Source: Penicillus capitatus (lineage: Eukaryota; Plantae; Chlorophyta). Taken from it: a stretch of 64,000 nucleotides of DNA. The stretch lies in assembly GCA_965649825.1 (NCBI GenBank), contig OZ287702.1, positions 672,786 to 736,785 on the forward strand, in the 5' to 3' direction. The translations under genes and the position numbers were made by a program. Under the pieces are notes generated by a model, which worked only from the letters and a program-made list of their open reading frames with translations, did no database searches and had not been told where the DNA came from. Positions 1,114 to 62,559 of the stretch are shown in pieces (the stretch's first letter is position 1; each line of letters opens with the position of its first letter).

Positions 1114-2667
1114 ATGTGGCACGTCGTCTTGCTCGTGGTCGTGCATTTGAGCCCCGCTCTGTCTATAGAATCGCGCTTCGATGAGTATCTATGGACGAAG
1201 GAGTCGTGGAAAGACTTCAAATTGCACAAGCCGCGTGACCGTTGGCGTGTCGAAGATGCTCCCTCAGCAGCACAGTATATCCATTCCCTAAGACAGCAGT
1301 GCGAATTCATCAGCGCGGACGGCCCCGGGGTGCCAAAACGCGACACAGCCAAAAGCGAAGAGGCATATGCGGACTGGCTGTCGGCCCTCGTCGATCGAGT
1401 CGTTGCCGGGGCAACGGTCTTTGGCAGCGTCTGCGGCTCGGCCGTCGAAGGAGGATTCGAAGCAGTGCTCGGCGATATCTACGAAGACGCTCTGCCCTCA
1501 CTCGGTCGCATTCGGATCCTTGTAGAGGACGTCTGCATTGACACCGTTGATGATATCATCAAGAAGTTCACTCTAAAGAGGGAAGTGCGTCAGGACGGAA
1601 CAGAGGAGTGGAAACTCGAACAGCGCAAGGAGGAGGACGAGGGAAGCTACGGGGAAGAGGTCGAGGCTGCCGAGTTAGCCTGTGACCGATTCATGCACCA
1701 ACGTCGTGGCGAGTTCGTTCATGCATTGCACGAGGCGGCGATCGACATCGATCGAGAGCTCAAGACGCTTGTGGAATGGCAATTGGAACAGGCGCGTGGA
1801 GTGATCGGCACTCGACGAGGGAAGGAAGGAAAGTGTGAGGATATTCATCCAAAGTGTGAGGAGTGGGCAGACAACGGCGAATGCGCACACAATCCATCTT
1901 ACATGCTCAAGATGTGTCGAATCAGCTGCGGCATCTGCGAAGGCGATCCATCCTTTGAAAAGTCATGCATCCGTTTCTGTCTGGCTTCCTCATAGAGTGA
2001 TTTTTTCAGAGTTGGGGTGTTTTCCCTGGGTGCTCATGCCATAGAGAGACTGCACCAAAAGCGTGAGGCGCTGGTCGATCGCCTGCAGCAACAGCTCTGT
2101 CCTCAGATGTCACATCAAGAGAGGCAGATCTATCCGATTCAGGAGGTCAAGTACGATCCTATTCTGAAAGGAAGAGAGATCAACGATGTTTCACGGGCAT
2201 TGACATTGGAGCTCGGAGATAAATGCTTTCTGCTGTCGAGAGGGTGGTGGTCCTACGAAATCTGTCTCTTCTCCACCATTCGACAACTCCATTACGACAC
2301 TGACGGCGAGACGGTTCTCAGTGCCAATCTCATTGGATCCTTCTCCGAGCAACGTACCTTACACATACACCCCCTCGTTCTCCAGAAGGATGACATGGAG
2401 AAGCTTGGACTGGTGGGAGAGCGACGCGCATATGTCATGCAAAGCTATGAGAATGGAGACAAGTGTGAGGAGAACGGTGTGGATCGCAGTGCCGTGATAC
2501 GACTGCTGTGTTCAGAGGGACTGAAACAACCTCCACTCGCTGCCAATTCCATCGGCATTGCTGTCGATGAACCCGACGCTTGTCATTATGCGATCCACAT
2601 CTTCCTTCCTCTCATGTGCCATTATCCAGAGTACAGTCTGTTTCCGTCCGTCAACAAGGAACGATAG
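1114..2667 (+). CDS. Secreted/ER protein with ShKT domain and C-terminal MRH (OS-9/glucosidase II beta-like) lectin domain; one intron near 1971-2007
   Basis: Hydrophobic N-terminus MWHVVLLVVVHLSPALS; six-Cys ShKT CEDIHPKCEEWADNGECAHNPSYMLKMCRISCGIC; MRH motifs GWWSYEICL, YENGDKC, DEPDACHY. Confidence 0.75.
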
Positions 2668-6250: not shown

Positions 6251-6785
6251 AGAGCACATGTCTACCTTCAGCAATGCATCCATAGTCTGCACGAGCGACG
6301 GTCACTTTGTACGACAGACATATCTGGACGCCCGACGGACCTTCCGAAACGCGAACGTACCAACACCCACCCCTCCACAGTCATATTGACCGACGGGTCC
6401 TCGCCCACGTTCGTCCGTCCCTCTGCTACCTGAATCGAAGGAGCCCTCCGCGTCTTCCGAGCGTCGCTGCATCGAAGCGCGTCAAGCGTCGCGGGAGGCA
6501 CCTTCATAGCGATGCACACATTTTCGCGCATGTCATTTATTTCGTCGCGCGGCTTCTCTAATTGACTTCTGTCGAGGTACGAAACGCCCCCAAGTGCAGT
6601 GACCGTCGATGTCAAAGGCGACAAGACAAGCATTTTGAGTGACAGAGCACAAATTGCGTCAGGAGATACCGTTATTGCGCAAGACACGGCATATCACTCT
6701 GTGCAACCACGCCGACCCGTACCACGACGAGGCCGCGTTTAAAGTCGCACTTTGCAAGCGGTTGCGCAATCTCTTCTCTTTTGCT

Positions 6786-8282
6786 ATGCCTCGTAAGTGG
6801 CTCTCCTGCATTCCGAGCCTTCGTCGAAAGAAACGTCTCTCAGCTTCGCGGACGAGCTGGTCTTATCTTCCCGCGCCGGCCATTGACAAAATCGTCTCCA
6901 TTCTGAAGAAGAGCTCCCGTTGGCGACGCGATGGACCATCCCTCCGGCAACTCAATCACTTCTGGCGTGCACAAATCGACGAACACATCCACGCCGTCTT
7001 TCCGCACAGCTGCCGGCAGTTAGTGTGGACAGACGTCACATCTCTCACAAGGTTCTCCAATCTGACCTCTCTGAACATCGAGCGCTTTGTCCCACCGCTC
7101 GAAAGTATCTCCAGCGTCTTGCGCAGTTCCAGCACCTGGAGTCGGGATGCCCAGAGGGGTCAAGATTCTTTCGTCTATCATCAGCCTTCCCTCGAAAGGA
7201 TGATCCGGACCATTGCAAATCTGCCTTGTCTATCTCATCTCACCATCTCTGCTGATCTGTTCTACCACCATCGTCAAGGACGCGATCTATGGCGCCAGCT
7301 CAAAGGGATAACATCACTAGAGATCCGTCGAGAGAAGGAAGTGGATCTGGACTGCTCATCTCTCTTCTACGCAGTGTTTGATGACTTCCCCCGAGTCAAG
7401 AGCATCGACATGACCTGTCCGCCATACCATCCTTGTCTGATGTCCAAACTCGAAGGCATGGAAACGGTGAAGCTTCGTGAGGCGGTGTGTCCCCGGCAGT
7501 TGGCATCGATCTCTGGTCTTGTCTCGCTTTCCGTCCGGGTGCTTCAGTTAGAAGAGGTGGATGTGCTGGAATGGATGCCACAGCTGACAAGTTTGGCCTT
7601 TGCTGTGGATACTCGGAAGGTCTTGAAGCAATTGTCTAATGCCCATGTGCTTCGGCGTCTGAACGATCTCAGCATCAGCAGCATGGCACGGCTGCGAGAG
7701 ATCAAGGGAACATTCTTTCAGGAATGCCTTAATTTGCAGTCGCTGTCACTGGAGCATTTTCGTTTCCTCGGCACCGAGCTGTCACGTCATCTCACTAATC
7801 TCACAAAACTGAAACTGCAGAAGTGCACCCTCGCGGGAGGCGTCTCTTTTCTCGCTCAACTCACCAAACTGGAAGAGCTGTCTTTCGTGATGGGATTTGC
7901 ACAGGAGGATGGAATGACAGGAATTGCCTCAGCCGAGATCACTCTGCCGAAACTCAGAGTCCTTCATCTCAAACCTGTCGCCAATGACATGACCTTTAAG
8001 GCGATCACCAAGTTTAAGAAGCTGGAGACCGTTCATGTGCATTGTGGTGCGGTGTCCAGTCAAGTGTTCAAAGAACTGGAATATCTTCCTGAACTGCGTA
8101 TCCTCTCCGTTCAGTTTGCCAGCAAAGCATTGGATCGATCCACCTCTCTTCTGTCTCTCTCTTTCCTCACATCTCTCGAAAGACTATCGATCGGTAGCAA
8201 AGTGGCCACATCCCATATCCGGAAACATCAGATCGAAAACCTGCAGCGAAAAGCACCCCAATTAACAATCGACCTTTCTTGA
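6786..8282 (+). CDS. Intronless F-box-like/leucine-rich repeat protein (ORF track starts at GTG 6639; first ATG 6786)
   Basis: 547-aa ORF with F-box-like WSYLPAPAIDKIVSIL followed by repeated LxxLxxLxL units. Confidence 0.7.
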   Translation: MPRKWLSCIPSLRRKKRLSASRTSWSYLPAPAIDKIVSILKKSSRWRRDGPSLRQLNHFWRAQIDEHIHAVFPHSCRQLVWTDVTSLTRFSNLTSLNIERFVPPLESISSVLRSSSTWSRDAQRGQDSFVYHQPSLERMIRTIANLPCLSHLTISADLFYHHRQGRDLWRQLKGITSLEIRREKEVDLDCSSLFYAVFDDFPRVKSIDMTCPPYHPCLMSKLEGMETVKLREAVCPRQLASISGLVSLSVRVLQLEEVDVLEWMPQLTSLAFAVDTRKVLKQLSNAHVLRRLNDLSISSMARLREIKGTFFQECLNLQSLSLEHFRFLGTELSRHLTNLTKLKLQKCTLAGGVSFLAQLTKLEELSFVMGFAQEDGMTGIASAEITLPKLRVLHLKPVANDMTFKAITKFKKLETVHVHCGAVSSQVFKELEYLPELRILSVQFASKALDRSTSLLSLSFLTSLERLSIGSKVATSHIRKHQIENLQRKAPQLTIDLS

Positions 8283-19716: not shown

Positions 19717-22700
19717 TCATTTGTTATCGAGGCGTTTACGCATAGCTCTCTGTCTTCTCCAATACAACAACGCTTGGATGATATGTCCAGATCTAAAAAG
19801 ACAGATGGCGCAGTTCTTGATGCATTCGACGAGTTCCGGGTGGTCGGCGTCGCCGTGAAGGCGCTCGCACATATCGAGAGCCCTTCTGTAAACCGGCAGA
19901 GCCTCGTTGATTCTCCCCGTACGGTCGAGTCCGATGGCGTAGCTCTTGATGCAGTCGACGAGTTCCGGGTGGTCGGCGTCGCCGTGAAGGCGCTCGCACA
20001 TATCGAGAGCCCTTCTGTAAACCGGCAGAGCCTCGTTGATTCTCCCCGTACGGTCGAGTCCGATGGCGTAGCTCTTGATGCAGTCGACGAGTTCCGGGTG
20101 GTCGGCGTCGCCGTGAAGGCGCTCGCACATATCGAGAGCCCTCTTGAGAACCGGCAGAGCCTCGTTGATTCTCCCCGTACGGTCAAGTCCGATGGCGCAG
20201 TTCTTGATGCATTCGACGAGTTCCGGGTGGTCGGCGTCGCCGTGAAGGCGCTCGCACATATCGAGAGCCCTTCTGTAAACCGGCAGAGCCTCGTCGATTC
20301 TCCCCGTACGGTCGAGTCCGATGGCGTATCTCTTGATGCAGTCGACGAGTTCCGGGTGGTCGGCGTCGCCGTGAAGGCGCTCGCACATATCGAGAGCCCT
20401 CTTGCGAACCGGCAGAGCCTCGTTGATTCTCCCCGTACGGTCGAGTCCGATGGCGTATCTCTTGATGCAGTCGACGAGTTCCGGGTGGTCGGCGTCGCCG
20501 TGAAGGCGCTCGCACATATCGAGAGCCCTCTTGCGAACCGGCAGAGCCTCGTCGATTCTCCCCGTACGGCCGAGTCCGATGGCGCAGTTCTTGATGCATT
20601 CGACGAGTTCCGGGTGGTCGGCGTCGCCGTGAAGGCGCTCGCACATATCGAGAGCCCTTCTGTAAACCGGCAGAGCCTCGTCGATTCTCCCCGTACGGTC
20701 GAGTCCGATGGCGTATCTCTTGATGCAGTCGACGAGTTCCGGGTGGTCGGCGTCGCCGTGAAGGCGCTCGCACATATCGAGAGCCCTCTTGCGAACCGGC
20801 AGAGCCTCGTTGATTCTCCCCGTACGGTCGAGTCCGATGGCGTATCTCTTGATGCAGTCGACGAGTTCCGGGTGGTCGGCGTCGCCGTGAAGGCGCTCGC
20901 ACATTTCTAGCGCTTTTTGAGAGTATAAGAGCGATTCGCCGAACATACATATCTCTTGATAGGCTCGCGACATTTGTTTCAGTAATCCCAGTTCCACGTT
21001 AGTGTCGTTGCATTTGTCGGAGTTTCTTAGGAGTGACAACTCGTTACGAGCGAGCAAAGTCCACTGCTCTCGATTTGAACGAGAAGTTTTCCACTCGCCA
21101 ATGTATCGGCCGATCGAATGCACTACTTCTTTGATGTGTTCTTCGATTGTATCCTTGTTTGTTTCTCCGTGCTTTTGGGTTTGGCTGGATATGTTGTTGC
21201 CGAAGAGAAGGTGTCGTACTACAAGCTGTGTCTCCGCGTGGATAAAGATCTGGTTCTTCTCTCTATCCCATGAGACATAGGAGAAACGCTCAAGGAGCCT
21301 TATCGATTTTCGTATCGTCGTCTTGGACTGTTGATCTTCGGGCATGATCCACTTGTATACCCACTCGATAGGCACTCCGCTCGGGTCAAGAAGTGCTAAC
21401 TTGGCGAGAAGGTCGAGTGAACGCGATCCCAGATCGCCGGGTTCCTTCGAGATTTTTCGCATGATCGAATTGAACACGAAAACCATTCCACCGGCTACCC
21501 CACCGAATTGCTTTGCAGAGAGCATTTCCATCACCTCGGCTTCTCTCTCCGAATCGTCATAGCATCGAACTTTATCTAACCACTCAGCGGGCGTCTGCTC
21601 TTCATGCTGCACCATTGCGAAGAACTGTGCAAGAGCCAGCGGAAATCTCGGCAAGATGTTGGTCAACTCATCCAAATCATTACCATATGATGGATCGCCG
21701 AATCCAAATTTCTTCGCCAGATCTTGTGTTTCGAGTTTGTCGAATGGATCGAGTCGAACCATGTCGTGTGACCAGTCCCTCGCTCCACCGTCCCTCGTGG
21801 TGACAATAACATGTCCATTTGCCAGCGGAAAACATTCACGAATGGATTCGAGATCAGGCGCGTCGTCAAAGACGAAGAGATTGCGCGATTTTCTCAGCTC
21901 TTCGTGAACACGTCTGACCAGTTTCGGGATCTCGATGTCCGTCGGAAGCTCCAAGCATTCTGCAATCTGTAAGAAAGCAGCTGAGAGGCCCTCCGCGGAG
22001 TCTGAAGGAATCCAGAAATCGTTAACGTAATTGCCCATGCTTTTGAGACTTTCGAACACCTTCGCCGCGAGCTGAGACTTTCCTATGCCGCCAGGCCCGA
22101 CGACTGCCTTGACTACAACTCGCTCCGTGCTCGATTCGAACGCTTCGACCAATTCGGTGTATTCAGACTTTCTCCCTGCAAAGTGACGAACCACGAGAGG
22201 CGCAAACAAACAATGATGCTTCTTCAGCGGAGAATGAACTTCGGTTGATGCACGCGATAATTCGCCTTCGAGATTCTTCCACACTTGGGAGAACAGCTTG
22301 CTGCTTATTGACTCTGTCCGGACGGACGGGACTGACTGGATCCGTTCCTCGACCGTCTTCCCTCCTAACCATTCGGACAGCACTCCCTCACATAACTCGC
22401 TATGCATGTTCGACGCCAAGTTCTTCAAGGCTCCATGCGCTCTGTGCTGCTCTGGCTTGCGTCCTTGGGCGCTCAACTGTGCTAGATTGTCGAGCATCTC
22501 CAAGAAGAGGTCAGGGTCGCTCGACCAGTCACACTTATCTCTTGGTTTCACGAGGCCTGCTAGAGTCTCGGCGCTCATACATCGAACGGCGTCATCCTTC
22601 CCGTGAATTGCGAGGCTGGTCAACATCTCCACTATGCCAAACCTCAGAGCCTTGCATCCTTCTTCGTTGGATCCCGTTTCTTCGAACACAAGCGACGAGA

Positions 22701-24300
22701 GGAGATCGTCAAATTGTTCAAACGCAGAGGGATCTTCAATAGCCGCGAAGCGCACAACATCTAGGGCGTAAAGATACTTGTACCACTGCTCTTCGCGAAC
22801 GATTCGGTTCTCTCTCGCTCGGGACAGTGCACTCGCCGTGGACTCCGCATTCCCCAGATCGAAGTCCAGAAGGACGGCATTTCGCACCGCTTGACATATT
22901 CCCACCGTGCCGTACACGAGGTTGGCAATTCGTCTTGCATTGTTGGTGATGCGGACGCTTCGTTTCGACGACTGCAAGAAGGTCAAGCTCTGCTGCACCA
23001 GCATCGCCTGGTACTTTACCGGATAGTGCCCCGCAGCGTCGATCACTCTCTGACTCCAGTTCTTGAACTTGGCGTACAACCCGCCGGGTCTGTTCGGATC
23101 CCAGCTGCCCGAGCCGATGTCAAAGAGGATTCTCAGACACTGATGCACAACGTGCAGAGCACTGCACTGCACTGGGAACATCTCCTTCGAGAAGCTCATT
23201 CTCTGCGGATCGAAGGCATCTAACAGAAACTGGGCCAGCTGTAGAGACAGTTTGGATCGTCTGCGAAGACCTCGGTGTCGACACTCTGAAGCGCGTGCTC
23301 CACTGCCTCGATCAGATATCTGTTGTTGAGCGCGTCGTTGCACAGCTTGTCGCGAAGGCTGTCGAAGAAGTCCTTGAGAAGAAGCAGATGCTCGTCGCCT
23401 GAGCCGTCGAGTCTGCACATGGCAAGGTACTCTCGGACTACTGCGCCACGATTGTCTGTCACGGCTCGCACAGGCATGTCGTTGAAGGCGTAGAGGACTC
23501 TTCGCATTATTTGTTCCAGCCCAAGTCTCAGTTCGGCGTCGTCCTCTTGGTTGAAAGCATTCACCACTTCCTCGAGACTACAATATCGTCTTCCGACAAG
23601 TGTTCTTCTGATGATCGAGCTGTCCATGCGAGTCAAAGCCCTTCTTGTCACCCAGCGAGAAGTACTCTCTTCGACGGCTGTCTGGTGTCCATGAGCATCG
23701 CTGCTGGACGAGGCTTCTCCGTTTCCGCCGCCCCAAAGCCCTAGCTTTCCCACAAAGACGAATCTCTCGACGCCGCGAGATCGATCAGACAGAATGTGGA
23801 CGCGACGACGCAGAGCACTTAGTGGCAGGTACATTAGGCTTCTCATCGCTTCTTCTGGGTCGCGCAGACCCTCGCAGTACAGTGGAACAGTCGACGTCTT
23901 CGTGAACAATCCCATTCGCTCCACAATCTTCCCTGCAAACTTCCCTCCGACTTGAACGATCTTCACGAGGCCGTGTCCCTCTATGTTGACCTCGCAGATT
24001 TCAACCAGGTTACCCTGAGAAGAGATCTAAAAGCCGAAACGGGGTAAACGCAGAATACCTTCTTGAATGCGGGTGAAATAGTTAGAGAAAAAGGACTATC
24101 TGCTTGACGGAACGGTAGTGAATTCGTGTTGACCGAGTGCCAGCTTTTGGGGATGGCAGCTATCTGCACACGAGGTTTCGCAAGTACGACTCGTTTGCGG
24201 TCGTATCCTTTGGCGAAGACATCTGCAGCCTGCCCACGGCTATTACGACGTGAAATGTAGGACTGCAATGGACTGGTGACACTCAGAGGATCCCACACCT
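19717..24300 (-). CDS. NLR-like STAND protein: N-terminal helical ARM-like domain + NB-ARC + TPR array; frame switch near 23240-23270; 5' exons may extend further
   Basis: Walker A GPGGIGKSQLA, Walker B LFVFDDA, sensor VIVTTRD, RFPLALAQ, IHAETQLVVR; nine TPRs; in-frame splice PAFKK/GNLVE across an intron near 24017-24060. Confidence 0.85.
19800..20910. repeat. Tandem array of 129-bp units (43-aa TPRs), 8 full plus 1 divergent terminal unit
   Basis: gagttccgggtggtcggcgtcgccgtgaaggcgctcgcacat recurs at 19831, 19960 and onward with 129-bp spacing. Confidence 0.97.
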
Positions 24301-31863: not shown

Positions 31864-33088
31864 CTATTCTGGAAACGAAAGAAGTGTGCCGAACAAGAAG
31901 TGTTGCATGATTGGAAACTTGGTCAGCACTTCGCCTTGATACATCCGAATCAGTCCACTATGGACCTAAACAACACGACCCCCTTTATCTCTCCATACCG
32001 CACCCCGATACTCACTTTTGTCCATGTCGGGACCTTGGAGGTATCGAACAGGTAAGGTGACGTCTCTGCCAATGGCCCCTTCTTCATCTTCACCACACAC
32101 AGACTCAGGGAAGACAGACCAGCGATATCTGTCACTCACTTTCTGTACGAAGCTGACGCATCCAAAGAACATATAGTGCGATTCGTGACAGCGCACGACG
32201 TCTTCTTGTAGAATTGAGGAAGGTGGTAACACGGGATGGTTGATCAGTTGTGCAGCTCCCAGAACAAAGGGGAGAAACTGATAGTCGTCTAATCCCCAGA
32301 CGCCAGCCGATCCGGCCGGTTCCAGTCCATATGTCATCTGGAGCTTTCGCATCAGATCCAGATACGAGGTCACCACACGAGTGACCACTGCCACACGATC
32401 ACCATCCGTAATCAATCCAAGCTTGGCCAGACAGAAAAGAAAAGCAAAGAAGTTTGTCTCGTGCCCCGTCCCGTAATCAATCCTCGACTTGTTCCCAAAA
32501 CTGTCATAGACATATGGAGTCAATTCCACCACAGCACCTTTAAGCTCATCGCCCACGATCTCTGGAAAGAGTGAATGGATACGGAGCGTGGTAAAAGGGA
32601 GTGTGACCTTCGACGAGATGGTTGGAAAACTCCAGTCGATCGTGCCACTTGCGAAAGGCCACATTGCCATAGCGCATTGTCTGCTCATGCGGAGGGATTT
32701 CGTCGATCCATGTCGAAAGACGTGCAAGGAAATCGAGGATGCGCTGAATGGCAGGTGCCACTTGCACATCGTCTGTCAGCTTAACGCCACGGACCGACTC
32801 GCCGAGGGCGAGGATGAATCCCAGGAACTCGCGAGCGGAGGAAGATTCAAGAAATCGTCGTAAATCGTCAATGGAGTGGACGCGTTTCTTGGCGGGCTTT
32901 AGACGTGGTGAGCCGACGAAGCTGTTGACGATGGACGGCATCACGGGTTCTGCCGATATCTGGGCCTCCTGTTGCAGAGCGCGGGCACTCGCGAAATCAA
33001 GTTGTCGTTGCGACACGGGACTGCGACTGCGCATCGGTGAACGACGCGGAGAGGTCGTCGGTATATCGGGAAGGCGTTCATTCTTCAT
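31864..33088 (-). CDS. PTPA: PP2A phosphatase activator PTPA (RRD1/2-like), multi-exon
   Basis: RYGNVAFRKWHDRL, SFGNKSRIDYGTGHETNF, LEPAGSAGVWGLDDYQFLPF, VHSGLIRMYQGEVLTKFPIMQHFLFG. Confidence 0.93.
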
Positions 33089-58093: not shown

Positions 58094-61000
58094 TTGATCG
58101 TCAAAGAACACCGACAGAAGGTCGGCTGTCTCCCTCCACGTTGCCCTTGCCCACAAAAGAACGCATGCTCAGCTGCCAAGCGAAGTGTCAAGACGATCGG
58201 CGTCGCTGAAGGAATGCTGCGGTCTGCGAAGGCGGCGTGTCGAAAAGATCTCCACATGTCCTCGTCTCTTCGCCCAGACGTCGCTGTCGGAGAGAGGGAC
58301 GTCGGGGCTCTCTACGTCGACTATGACTCGACGCTCACCCTCTCATCTTCCATACCTCGACAGTTTGCAGCCATTTCAGAGTCCTTTGCACCAGTGAATC
58401 GATCGTTTGCTATCTTGGATATCTGTCTCATTAAACCGAGTGCCCCCTGATCAGAGTGACGCGAAAGAACGATCGGAAACGATGGCAAAGGTGTCAGCAG
58501 ACTATCAAAAAGAATACGATGCCTTTATCGAAGAATGCATCGATTCCACGGTGAGGCCATTCAGTGGAAGGCGCGACTGTCGACGATGGATTCTCTAGTC
58601 GACGGATGTGTTCGATTGGAATATGATTCGAGATTTCATTTCGAAGATGGCCGCCTTCGAAAGGAAGTGGGTCGGGATACTCGAAGAGAGTCGCGTCCTG
58701 CAAGGTCAGCGATCTGCACTGTGATGATCGATCGTGCATTCGACGGCGGAATAGGAGTGCACGAGGAAGTCTTTTTGCAGGCCGCCCGAAAAACAGAACT
58801 GCATCCTGGATGCGTGCAGGTGCTCGAGAAGTGTGCCAAGCAAGGAATACCAATCGAGGTTCTAAGCATCAACTGGTCGGCAGAATGGATCCGGCGTTCT
58901 CTGACTGACCAATCCAACAACCTCAAGCTTGCACATCTCACACCACCAGTTCTTCTTACAACAGAGCATCACTGTTGTGCAGAGTGATTCTGGAAAAGGA
59001 CAGCGAAAGAATTCGCATCCATGCGAACGAACTGGAGTACGATAATGGCCTCTCAACAGGAAGGCTGGTGAAGTATCCATCCATATTTATGGCTTCACAC
59101 TATGGCAAAGGGTCGCCGCTGTGCATAGAGAGATCGAGTGCGGCGAGGAGAAGGGGAAGCGGATGAAGACGTTATTGGTGAAGAGGTCTGGATCGAAAGG
59201 TCAAACGATCTACATCGGCGATTCTCTCCTGGACTTGGAACCCCTTCTTCTCGTATGGCCTTATCAAGCATCGCTGAAACTGTTTCTCGTTCTGCACAGG
59301 CGGATGTTGGAATCGTTCTCGGTGCTGACCAGACGCTTCTGTCGTTTCTGAAACGCGCTCGTGTGGAAGTGCTATCTATCTCGACAGGCAGTTTGAGAAA
59401 TACGAGCTCGAAGCTCATCCGAGAGAGTTCAAATGGTCGATCCACCTCGTCCACTCGATCCACCTCTTATTTGTTTTGCCAGACGCAGAGAACCCTCGGG
59501 TGTTTCAGGCAATGAACTGGAAAGAAGTGCAGCGGTTTCTCTTCGATGAGGCTGGCCGTGTGCCCCGTGTCCTCGTCATCGCGGGTTCCGACTCCGGTGG
59601 CGGAGCAGGGATCCAAGCAGATCTCAAGGTCACACACTAGTTAAATCGCTACGTCGTCGTGACTGATGGAGATGGATTTGGTAGACATGCCTGGCAGTCG
59701 GATCGTTTGCGACGACGGCGATCACGGCTGTCACGGCGCAGAACACCTTCGGTGTCCAGTCCATCCACTCCATTCCCGCAGGAGAGATAGAACGCCAAAT
59801 GGACGCTGTCCTTTCTGGTAACGTCTGTCAGAGGTTGACCGAATCGCAAATGGCCGCTGTGCAGACATCGGGACAGATGCCGTCAAGATCGGCATGTTGC
59901 CTTCTACCGAAGCCCTGAGGTCTGTTGTGAAGAAACTGGGAGAACATGAAGCGCCAAGTGTTGTGGTGGATCCGGTGCTGGTCGCAACAAGCGGAGACAA
60001 ACTTACTGGAGATCAGGTTGCAGAAATGATAATCAAGGAGCTTCTTCCACTGGCGACAGTGGTGACGCCCAATATCCACGAAGCTGAGATCCTGAGTGGA
60101 CAGAGAATCACTTCGCTTGACGATATGGAATCAGCCGCCCGTTGCATCCATCGAGCAGGTCCACAAATGGTTGTCGTGAAGGGAGGCCACATGCCGGAAT
60201 CGAAGAGGGTCCACGACGTGATCTTCGATGGAAGGGATGTGCACATTCTGGAACACGCGTTCATCGAAACGCAGCGATTGCACGGAACCGGATGCACATT
60301 GTCATCGGCGATCGCATCCTATCTGGCTCAAGGCATGGTACCATTGGTTGCCATTCGACATGCCATCTTCTATCTACAAGACGCATTGGGCGGCAGTCTA
60401 GAAATGGACATCGGTCAAGGCACACAGCTGCCATTCCATCATGGCTATCGGTTACATCGTTGGCCAAAAAGACGGTCTTTTCGGACAGCGTTCAGTCTAT
60501 GTCTCTATGGAATCACGGATCAGAGGTACAACGAGAAGCACAAGCGGAGCTTTAGAGAAGCTGTGAGAGGGGCTATTGATGGAGGCGTGACTATTCTGCA
60601 GATCAGAGACAAGGATAGTGATGCGTCTCACTTCTTAGATTGCGTTAAAGTCGCGATGGAAGAGGCGGAACAACATGGAGTGCCAGTGATCGTCAACGAC
60701 AGGGTCGATGTGGCCATCGCCGCTGATGCTGACGGTATCCATGTCGGACAGGTACACAAATACTTCCGGTTCCTGAGCCAGATCCGACAATGTTATTTTG
60801 ATCTCCCATAGGAGGATCTGCCAGCAGCCGAAACGCGACGACTGATCGGTCCCGATAAGATTCTAGGAGTTTCTGCAAAAACAGTGCAGGAAGCGCTGGC
60901 GGCAGAGAGCGCTGGTGCCGATTATCTAGGCGTCGGCTCTATGTACGCAACACCGTCGAAAGACTCCTCAATCGTCGGTGTCGATCGGCTGCGATCGATT

Positions 61001-61201
61001 CGAGAAGCAGTTTCGATTCCGATCGTTGCGATCGGAGGTATCACCGAGGAGAATATCGACGAGATCATCGATGCCGGATCGGATGGTGTCGCTGTGATCT
61101 CAGCGATCTTCGACTCGGAGAACGTCTCAGAGAAGACATCGAGGTTGCGATCCAGAATCGACATCGCTCGTCCATCAGTCACCTCATCGCGCCTTTCTTG
61201 A
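58094..61201 (+). CDS. TH1: Thiamine biosynthesis fusion: HAD phosphatase (TH2-like) + HMP(-P) kinase ThiD + thiamine-phosphate synthase ThiE; start approximate
   Basis: HAD motifs [29 protein letters not shown]; Thi[47 protein letters not shown]; Thi[25 protein letters not shown]; in-frame linkage via an intron near 59435-59482. Confidence 0.85.
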
Positions 61202-61239: not shown

Positions 61240-62559
61240 ATGTTATCGCCGAGTTGCTCGATTCCTGGATCGATCCGTTACCCGAAACAAGCACGCGTCG
61301 AGAATGAGAATAGCGAACGAACACTGACGGATAGAGAGGAAACGCCTAACGTCGTCGACGACGATGACCTATCGGACTTTGACGATCATCCCGATATCGT
61401 TAAACTCTTGGAGCAGCGTTTCGCTCGCGGAGTCTACTGCGGAAAAGTGTTCGGCACGAAGGTCTGCATCAGCAATCTTGGATCGACCTTCGATGACGCT
61501 CAACTTGCGAACGAACTGACGCAACACCTCAGTGGCGTCGATGCCGTGCGTTTCGCCAAAGTCCCAATCGAATCCCTTACGCTGCGAACTGGCCACGGCT
61601 GCATCGAGTTCGATTCGTTCGAGAGCGCCATCAAAGGAATGCTCCAGCTGGAGACGCTCTACCTAGACTGTCCGGGATCGCCCCTTCCCCGTCCAATTCT
61701 CAGCCACTTTCCTCAGAGATTAGAGCCTCTTTGGGGAAAGAATGACCTCCCAGGATACATTCTAGATCACGGTGTGCCGCCACACTTCTGCCAGCCAAAC
61801 ACGTTTGAGTACGATGTGGCCTTGGAATGGAGACAGATGCAGAAGTGGCTGGCACTGTCGAAGAAGAGGCTGTGTGATGTCTATGTCAAAAGCATCTGCA
61901 AAGAGCTGATCGAGTACAAGTCCCACGTGGACATCGCAGCACTCGAAGCTGTCTTCCAAACTCCAGTACAGCTGCCCAAATCGCGAACCGTCGTGTTCAA
62001 AGGCGTATCAACCGAGCTCAAGAACGAGCAGATCCGAAATGCTGTCGAGGTGGCTGACTACTGTGGCAACATCCGTCGACTGGAGTGTCCAGTGACAGGA
62101 CAGGAGTCGAGTACCGCTTTCGTAGAAATCAGTTCTGCCGAAAGGGCCGCCTCCTTCGCAGAGGACATGAAGAACTTTCTCTTCATCATGGGACGCTCTC
62201 CCCGTCCGGCCGAAGCAGACATCTTTCGATTTGGACCCCCGCGCGGATTCGAAGGCATCTTCGATCGTGCCATCGAATCTGTCTTCTGTCTGAAAATGCG
62301 TGAAATGGATCCTGCACTCTACTCCAAGACGCACGTCATCGATCTGTCCTCCTGTACTGAAGAGAAGAAGAAGCGTTGTGCGAAGATTCGGAGAATTCTG
62401 GACGGTATGATGGCGATGCGTGGTGACTGGAAACTCGAGTCCTACGCCTTTCAGCAAGATCTACATGTCCGTCAGAAAGACTGGATCGATAGAGAGATGA
62501 AGAAGCTGGAGAAACTGGAACGCGTCGTCCCACAGTTTTTCGATGAAAAGGAACGATAG
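61240..62559 (+). CDS. Intronless ASI1/IBM2-like protein with two RRM-like domains and no BAH domain
   Basis: ISNLGSTF..GHGCIEFDS..PRPIL and HFCQPNTFEYDVALEWR resemble the ASI1 RRM and its downstream SQPNxxExDMAMEW motif; second RRM-like unit VVFKGVS..TAFVEISS. Confidence 0.65.
   Translation: MLSPSCSIPGSIRYPKQARVENENSERTLTDREETPNVVDDDDLSDFDDHPDIVKLLEQRFARGVYCGKVFGTKVCISNLGSTFDDAQLANELTQHLSGVDAVRFAKVPIESLTLRTGHGCIEFDSFESAIKGMLQLETLYLDCPGSPLPRPILSHFPQRLEPLWGKNDLPGYILDHGVPPHFCQPNTFEYDVALEWRQMQKWLALSKKRLCDVYVKSICKELIEYKSHVDIAALEAVFQTPVQLPKSRTVVFKGVSTELKNEQIRNAVEVADYCGNIRRLECPVTGQESSTAFVEISSAERAASFAEDMKNFLFIMGRSPRPAEADIFRFGPPRGFEGIFDRAIESVFCLKMREMDPALYSKTHVIDLSSCTEEKKKRCAKIRRILDGMMAMRGDWKLESYAFQQDLHVRQKDWIDREMKKLEKLERVVPQFFDEKER

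Follow-up and report, generated by a model that had tools for sequence, protein, structure and literature searches.

A 64,000-nucleotide stretch of Penicillus capitatus contig OZ287702.1 (positions 672,786 to 736,785 of the forward strand; called the window below, with positions counted from its first nucleotide) carries what we read as a single nuclear gene of chlorophyte type for thiamine synthesis. Its predicted product joins a phosphatase domain of HAD subfamily IB to TH1, the bifunctional hydroxymethylpyrimidine (HMP) and HMP phosphate (HMP-P) kinase / thiamine-phosphate synthase, in the order HAD-ThiD-ThiE. We give this reading a probability of roughly 85%. Catalytic motifs of all three domains are intact in alignments. 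On the evidence of protein comparisons, the HAD-ThiD-ThiE architecture is an ordinary and widespread one among chlorophytes, and the window copy is a divergent example without TenA.

The gene model was built by hand from the three-frame translation of the + strand. It has 11 exons totalling 2403 nt that form one frame of 800 amino acids, with 10 introns of 47-71 nt, all GT..AG, and a TGA stop codon at 61199-61201. The parts of the gene are as follows.

58256-61201 (+): whole HAD-ThiD-ThiE coding region, from the exon model, domain scans and end-to-end alignment with 12 algal homologs
58256-58393, 58455-58550, 58599-58704, 58755-58895 (+): exons 1-4
58967-59072, 59129-59252, 59300-59435 (+): exons 5-7
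59483-59628, 59685-59817, 59865-60751, 60812-61201 (+): exons 8-11
58256-59544 (+): HAD subfamily-IB phosphatase domain, residues 1-303, exons 1-8
58896-58998 (+): intron 4 stretch, spliced as 58896-58966 (GAG acceptor) or 58949-58998 (AAG acceptor) when frame-preserving splices are enumerated
59436-59482 (+): intron 7, at the HAD/ThiD junction; 47 nt, GT..AG, phase 1, pyrimidine-rich 3' end
59483-59628 (+): exon 8, encoding the last HAD strand and helix, a six-residue linker (DEAGRV) and the ThiD N-terminus in one open frame
59563-60451 (+): ThiD domain (HMP / HMP-P kinase), about residues 310-571, with its GTGC motif at 60284-60295
60497-61168 (+): ThiE domain (thiamine-phosphate synthase), about residues 587-790, split by intron 10 (60752-60811)

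The window is taken as eukaryotic because its reading frames are interrupted by many short introns; its GC content is about 50%, and that of the thiamine gene about 52%. ThiD and most of ThiE are encoded in one 887-nt exon (59865-60751). The region of intron 4 corresponds to a variable loop of the HAD domain, whose length differs among the aligned homologs. An earlier note on this DNA had placed the gene at 58094-61201. Its right end coincides with the TGA, while its left end has to be moved: there is no start codon at 58094, and the candidate in-frame ATGs lie at 58214 and 58256, of which the former would add 14 residues. A short upstream open reading frame (ORF) begins at 58165 (+), 5' of both candidate starts. 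The opposite strand under the gene has no ORF of 150 residues or more.

The fusion does not depend on which intron 7 is chosen, because exon 8 alone encodes the HAD end and the ThiD start with no stop codon. The earlier note had described a GT..AG intron of about 45 nt near 59435-59482, a last HAD helix that runs into ThiD without a stop, and one polypeptide spanning all three domains. These points hold. The intron, running GTCGAT...TTTTGCCAG, joins ...KLIRESSN to the exon 8 peptide when excised and yields exactly the peptide quoted in that note; helix and ThiD share the open frame of exon 8; and the single 800-residue frame has the expected Pfam domains and end-to-end homologs. Since the HAD and ThiD frames overlap by some 180 nt, other in-frame splices are permitted (59427-59482 and 59436-59488 also keep the frame), so the exact boundaries of intron 7 are ambiguous. 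Every splice option that retains both conserved blocks yields the identical HAD-ThiD fusion.

The same overlap gives rise to a rival account with two products. Were intron 7 retained, the HAD frame would run through it to a TGA at 59513-59515, and ThiD-ThiE could be made from the overlapping ATG of MNWKEV at 59509-59511. The unspliced frame is indeed open to 59515 with an ATG at the same spot, and this is the call to be expected of a prokaryote-style gene caller. We regard it as very improbable. The residues after the MNWKEV ATG make up the helix that closes the HAD domain, a conserved element in which Trp295 (59518-59520) is invariant across 27 sequences (the window and 26 algal proteins) within a junction block of consensus VLYEAxSWxEIxAFLF. 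The ATG thus sits inside the HAD domain, and an unspliced HAD product would miss a conserved part of the fold. P0123 and P0124, two members of the family that consist of HAD alone, terminate a few residues past the corresponding helix, not ahead of it. Moreover, the Met of MNWKEV is not conserved among homologs, the 26-residue read-through tail has no counterpart in any of them, intron-poor relatives have one continuous ORF, and intron 7 is like the other nine introns in size and ends.

A single fused polypeptide also fits the AlphaFold model of a homolog, P0020 (mean predicted local distance difference test score 87), which has a strand at 289-293, a helix at 296-305, a linker at 306-317 and ThiD from 318. 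The plant TH2 motif SSWAEIHSF, cited in the earlier note, resembles the algal SWAEIxAF; such a resemblance is no test of orthology.

The HAD domain retains the four motifs of its family, and all of the residues named here occupy invariant columns in the homolog alignments. Motif I is DYDST at 58319-58333 (D22-Y-D24-S-T26, with D22, D24 and T26 invariant), motif II has Ser151 (58865-58867), motif III Lys204 (59151-59153), and motif IV is GDSLLD from G226 to D231, with Asp227 at 59220-59222 and Asp231 at 59232-59234. Pfam HAD model PF12710 matches residues 22-233 with 34.8 bits (cut-off 27); NCBIfam TIGR01488 (HAD-SF-IB) scores 41.5 bits, under its cut-off of 45. A profile built from the algal HAD domains finds structures of the phosphoserine phosphatase SerB (E = 1e-12), which implies the subfamily-IB fold. 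In BLASTP the HAD part (residues 1-305) matches more than 60 algal proteins over near its full length, with E from 1e-43 to 1e-12 and 22-31% identity, and these matches fall directly upstream of ThiD.

Assignment of the other two domains is by much higher scores. For ThiD, Pfam Phos_pyr_kin covers residues 319-561 (280 bits) and NCBIfam TIGR00097 (HMP-P kinase) gives 293 bits (cut-off 205); invariant residues include D411-P-V, K383/G385/M386/L387 (KxGML) and G516-T-G-C519. ThiE, C-terminal to ThiD in the same polypeptide, is covered by Pfam TMP-TENI at residues 589-770 (204 bits) and by TIGR00693 (206 bits, cut-off 145), and has the conserved motifs QxRxK, NDR, HVGQxD, TxxK and IGG. The P0020 model matches ThiD structures with TM-scores of at least 0.9, the yeast THI20 structure 3rm5 through ThiD, and the ThiE structures 1xi3 and 2tps. 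Its PDB matches are mostly to ThiD and ThiE and are uninformative on the HAD domain. The arrangement of the domains is left undefined by this model because its predicted template modelling score is 0.53.

Another explanation would be that the fusion is only apparent, either in a pseudogene undergoing decay or through misassembly; the contig comes from a long-read, metagenome-style assembly, and two of the introns have weak or ambiguous ends. Against it stand 800 open codons with ten consistent short introns, the retention of all invariant catalytic residues in three domains, and a contig of 6.9 Mb with a nominal coverage of 344x. We find it scarcely credible.

The whole 800-residue model aligns end to end with 12 algal proteins, a colinear alignment that was then extended to 26. 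A search with it returns many green-algal proteins at 92-98% coverage and land-plant TH1 at about 60%. In more than 60 of the retrieved proteins a homologous HAD domain immediately precedes ThiD-ThiE, usually with TenA in front. The earlier note had implied that the fusion was new, and had itself allowed that it might turn out to be the chlorophyte norm. The former is not supported, given these proteins, and the latter is what public gene models and mRNA-shaped contigs indicate. HAD-ThiD-ThiE occurs in Ulvophyceae (Bryopsis, Ostreobium), Trebouxiophyceae (Apatococcus, Myrmecia, Elliptochloris, Chlorella, Micractinium, Picochlorum, Trebouxia), Chlorophyceae (Gonium, Volvox, Chlamydomonas schloesseri, Raphidocelis, Scenedesmus, Pleodorina, Sanguina), Chlorodendrophyceae, Pedinophyceae and Chloropicophyceae; Tetraselmis and one pedinophyte are also among the algae named. 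An exhaustive representative search adds at least 15 clusters (50% identity level) whose match extends from the HAD region to ThiE, including Chlamydomonas incerta KAG2445538.1.

In a Pfam scan of eight representatives the order is TenA, then ThiD, then ThiE, the HAD block after TenA often falling below the Pfam threshold; its place ahead of ThiD is therefore set by alignments and BLASTP, not by Pfam. The order TenA-HAD-ThiD-ThiE was found in Bryopsis, Tetraselmis, Gonium, Chlamydomonas schloesseri, Raphidocelis and Scenedesmus. ORFs for the entire TenA-HAD-ThiD-ThiE protein are also present on two 3.8-kb Logan contigs, whose short flanks give them the shape of assembled mRNAs. P0020, which has 803 residues and no TenA, is encoded by one ORF without interruption on three metagenome contigs (63% GC), and a contig of 2863 nt holds the ORF entire. 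Clustered with P0020 are A0A7S2T7J5 and Chloropicon roscoffensis WZN65881.1, the annotation of which reads only 'ThiE'.

In a marine contig, L008, the gene is split by introns into pieces for TenA, for HAD plus the start of ThiD, for ThiD-ThiE and for ThiE. An intron position common to L008 and the window was considered and rejected, as the intron of L008 falls within IQ|ADLK and so is offset by four codons from window intron 8. That intron (1895-2020 of L008) has CCCTGAC-like repeats and a 14-nt direct repeat at its flanks (CAGGCCGACCTCAA), the pattern to be expected if an introner-like element had inserted and duplicated its target site.

In a neighbour-joining tree built on ThiD-ThiE, the window sequence falls within chlorophytes and separate from land plants, which suggests a green-algal type, the tree method being only a rough one. 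The product has no more than 45% identity to any protein in a collection of 5.8 billion, and its source organism is therefore without a close sequenced relative in that collection.

The activities proposed for the three domains form a short pathway. ThiD would phosphorylate HMP and HMP-P to HMP pyrophosphate (HMP-PP), ThiE would combine HMP-PP with thiazole phosphate into thiamine monophosphate (TMP), and HAD would remove the phosphate from TMP to leave free thiamine, as the counterpart of the HAD half of land-plant TH2/PALE1. Thiamine pyrophosphokinase takes free thiamine as its substrate, and eukaryotes must first dephosphorylate TMP.

We think it probable, with appreciably less confidence than for the architecture, that the window HAD domain hydrolyses TMP. 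It is so assigned because its linkage to the TMP-making enzyme is constant, because the need for TMP dephosphorylation ahead of thiamine pyrophosphokinase is general in eukaryotes, and because the TenA-then-HAD order of the algal proteins is that of rice PALE1/TH2, whose mutant accumulates TMP. Instead, the gene might be fused as described and its HAD domain act on another ester (HMP-P, thiazole phosphate, thiamine diphosphate (ThDP) or an unrelated metabolite) or be regulatory. Among solved structures the closest in sequence are phosphoserine phosphatases, the cap that determines HAD specificity shows little conservation here (24-33% identity), and the literature searched reports no biochemical data on any algal member. 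Against such a role stand the fusion to the TMP-making enzyme, which is permanent in many lineages, and the requirement of the eukaryotic pyrophosphokinase for free thiamine, which is established pathway knowledge. Rice PALE1, with the TenA-HAD order of the algal proteins, points the same way, since its loss raises TMP and lowers thiamine (PMC7868968). We judge a different substrate or a regulatory role unlikely. Channelling of TMP between the domains, with relief of product inhibition, is speculation.

Several observations weigh against our interpretation of the gene and of its HAD domain. The splice junctions of the model are predictions, and the N-terminus, with any targeting peptide, is uncertain. 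With only 22-31% identity to its homologs, the HAD domain is divergent, and a single-sequence database search with it gave no match at E <= 0.001. Land-plant TH2 was absent from the results of all HAD searches, namely the single-sequence search, a word-prefiltered profile search (6 matches) and an exhaustive representative search, the profile of which had 832 positions including the ThiD-ThiE columns, so that kinase and synthase matches were dominant. The tie of the window HAD to the sole characterised TMP phosphatase of TH2 type is thus indirect. Substrate specificity is unreadable from homology because the closest solved structures by sequence are the phosphoserine phosphatases.

As for TenA, an upstream exon of the thiamine gene encoding it was considered and rejected: neither tblastn with TenA-bearing homologs nor a search of all six-frame fragments with a TenA profile (a hidden Markov model) found TenA in the 64-kb window. 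Chlorellales-type homologs (P0010, P0016, P0018, P0021 and P0034) start at a Met in the last TenA helix (M-x-LEV-x-FFS-x-QPY), just before HAD, and their N-termini look like either what is left of a lost TenA or a shortened start that these proteins have in common. The window protein has no such remnant in the alignment. With a remnant in the one and none in the other, TenA seems to have been lost more than once. Where TenA is present, in P0002 and others (N-terminal 230 residues), alignment to 1tyh finds that it retains the Cys in the 'LPC' motif of Bacillus subtilis TenA, so the TenA of the fused algal proteins looks like a Cys-type thiaminase II; the TenA of land-plant TH2 is said to be of the Cys-less type.

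A wider proposal, to which we give a little less than even odds, is that chlorophyte TH1 is a thiamine synthase, in which the fused HAD would dephosphorylate the TMP made by ThiE of the same polypeptide, possibly with some channelling, and from which TenA would have disappeared on several occasions, one of them in this lineage. If so, the long-missing phosphatase step of algal thiamine synthesis would be located within TH1 itself. Genome surveys of thiamine auxotrophy that seek a separate phosphatase, or that score a bifunctional TH1, would overlook the step. With HAD as the TMP phosphatase, three or four successive steps in the making and salvage of thiamine would reside on one green-algal protein, in contrast to land plants, which spread such steps over two proteins in different compartments; this would bear on the site of thiamine synthesis within algal cells. 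The split of TH1 and TH2 in the plant lineage, or their joining in chlorophytes, would make a neat case of gene fission or fusion. For the window itself the gain is chiefly a correct annotation, its gene being distinctive only in the absence of TenA and in its divergence.

Other features of the window were noted as follows.

61240-62559 (+): ORF of more than 440 residues with a weak NOPS-domain match
19717-23418 (-): ORF of 1233 residues with NB-ARC (residues 432-615) followed by about nine near-identical 42-residue TPR_12/TPR_10 repeats (ALDMCERLHGDADHPELV...)
1114-1995 (+): ORF that ends in a ShK domain
6639-8282 (+): leucine-rich-repeat ORF
31966-32769 (-): exon for PTPA (phosphotyrosyl phosphatase activator), 197 bits
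34483-35469 (-): Rce1-like CAAX protease

The first of these is on the same strand as the thiamine gene, and its first ATG is only 38 nt past the stop codon of that gene; with so small a gap, either the 3' untranslated region of the thiamine gene overlaps the start of the next gene or the two share a transcript. The product of 19717-23418 is, by its domain content, a predicted NLR-like protein with a very recent repeat expansion. No thiamine pyrophosphate (TPP) riboswitch, other Rfam family or tRNA was found in the window.

The HAD-ThiD-ThiE architecture is plain to see in public protein records, yet as far as we searched it is undescribed and uncharacterised in the literature. The literature searched, which excluded Mimura et al. 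2016, a study said to have defined TH2, yielded no account of algal proteins with a HAD-TH1 or TH2-TH1 fusion. Algal TH1 is treated as a plant-like bifunctional enzyme, with no HAD mentioned, in the Chloropicon primus genome paper (PMC6731263), by McRose et al. 2014 (PMC4260697), by Gutowska et al. 2017 (PMC5635689) and in a diatom study (PMC9544697).

Physical links between thiamine enzymes are known from other organisms, with other partners. Yeast THI20 (ThiD-TenA) and THI6 (ThiE-ThiM) are likewise eukaryotic fusions of thiamine enzymes; they differ in partners and order and have no HAD. In bacteria, HAD phosphatases that are clustered or fused with thiamine genes were reportedly shown by Hasnain et al. 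(Biochem J, 2016) to prefer TMP. These embody the same idea of a physical link, but are prokaryotic and belong to several HAD subfamilies.

Land-plant TH1 has ThiD and ThiE in the same order as the window protein and is 44-47% identical to that half of it. It has no HAD domain, is about 500-590 residues long, and its matches cover about 60% of the window protein. The proposed functional counterpart of the window HAD lies in land-plant TH2/PALE1 (TenA + HAD), the product of a separate gene, not joined to ThiD-ThiE; its TenA-then-HAD order is like that of the algal relatives, whereas the window gene itself is without TenA. The separation of TH1 and TH2 in land plants, as asserted in the earlier note, agrees with the lack of HAD in TH1 relatives and with rice PALE1/TH2, a separate TenA + HAD protein; in the rice mutant TMP builds up, and thiamine and ThDP are reduced (PMC7868968).

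The nearest counterparts are other chlorophyte proteins. In those with TenA-HAD-ThiD-ThiE (Bryopsis sp. BSKO_08025, which is P0002; Chlamydomonas incerta KAG2445538.1, which is P0127; Gonium, Volvox and Tetraselmis), HAD, ThiD and ThiE are colinear with the window protein and the junction motif VLYEAxSWxEIxAFLF is held in common. The Bryopsis protein is the best full-length match (43%). The difference is the N-terminal TenA of about 200-250 residues, which the window protein lacks. Chloropicon roscoffensis (WZN65881.1 / A0A7S2T7J5) shares this lack: its protein is also HAD-ThiD-ThiE without TenA, is of nearly the same length (802/803 against 800 residues), and has the motif I DYDST and the same Trp in the junction helix. 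Identity between the two is about 39% overall and about 24% in the HAD part. The Chloropicon gene is an uninterrupted ORF in a compact genome of 63% GC, in contrast to the window gene with its ten short introns and about 52% GC.

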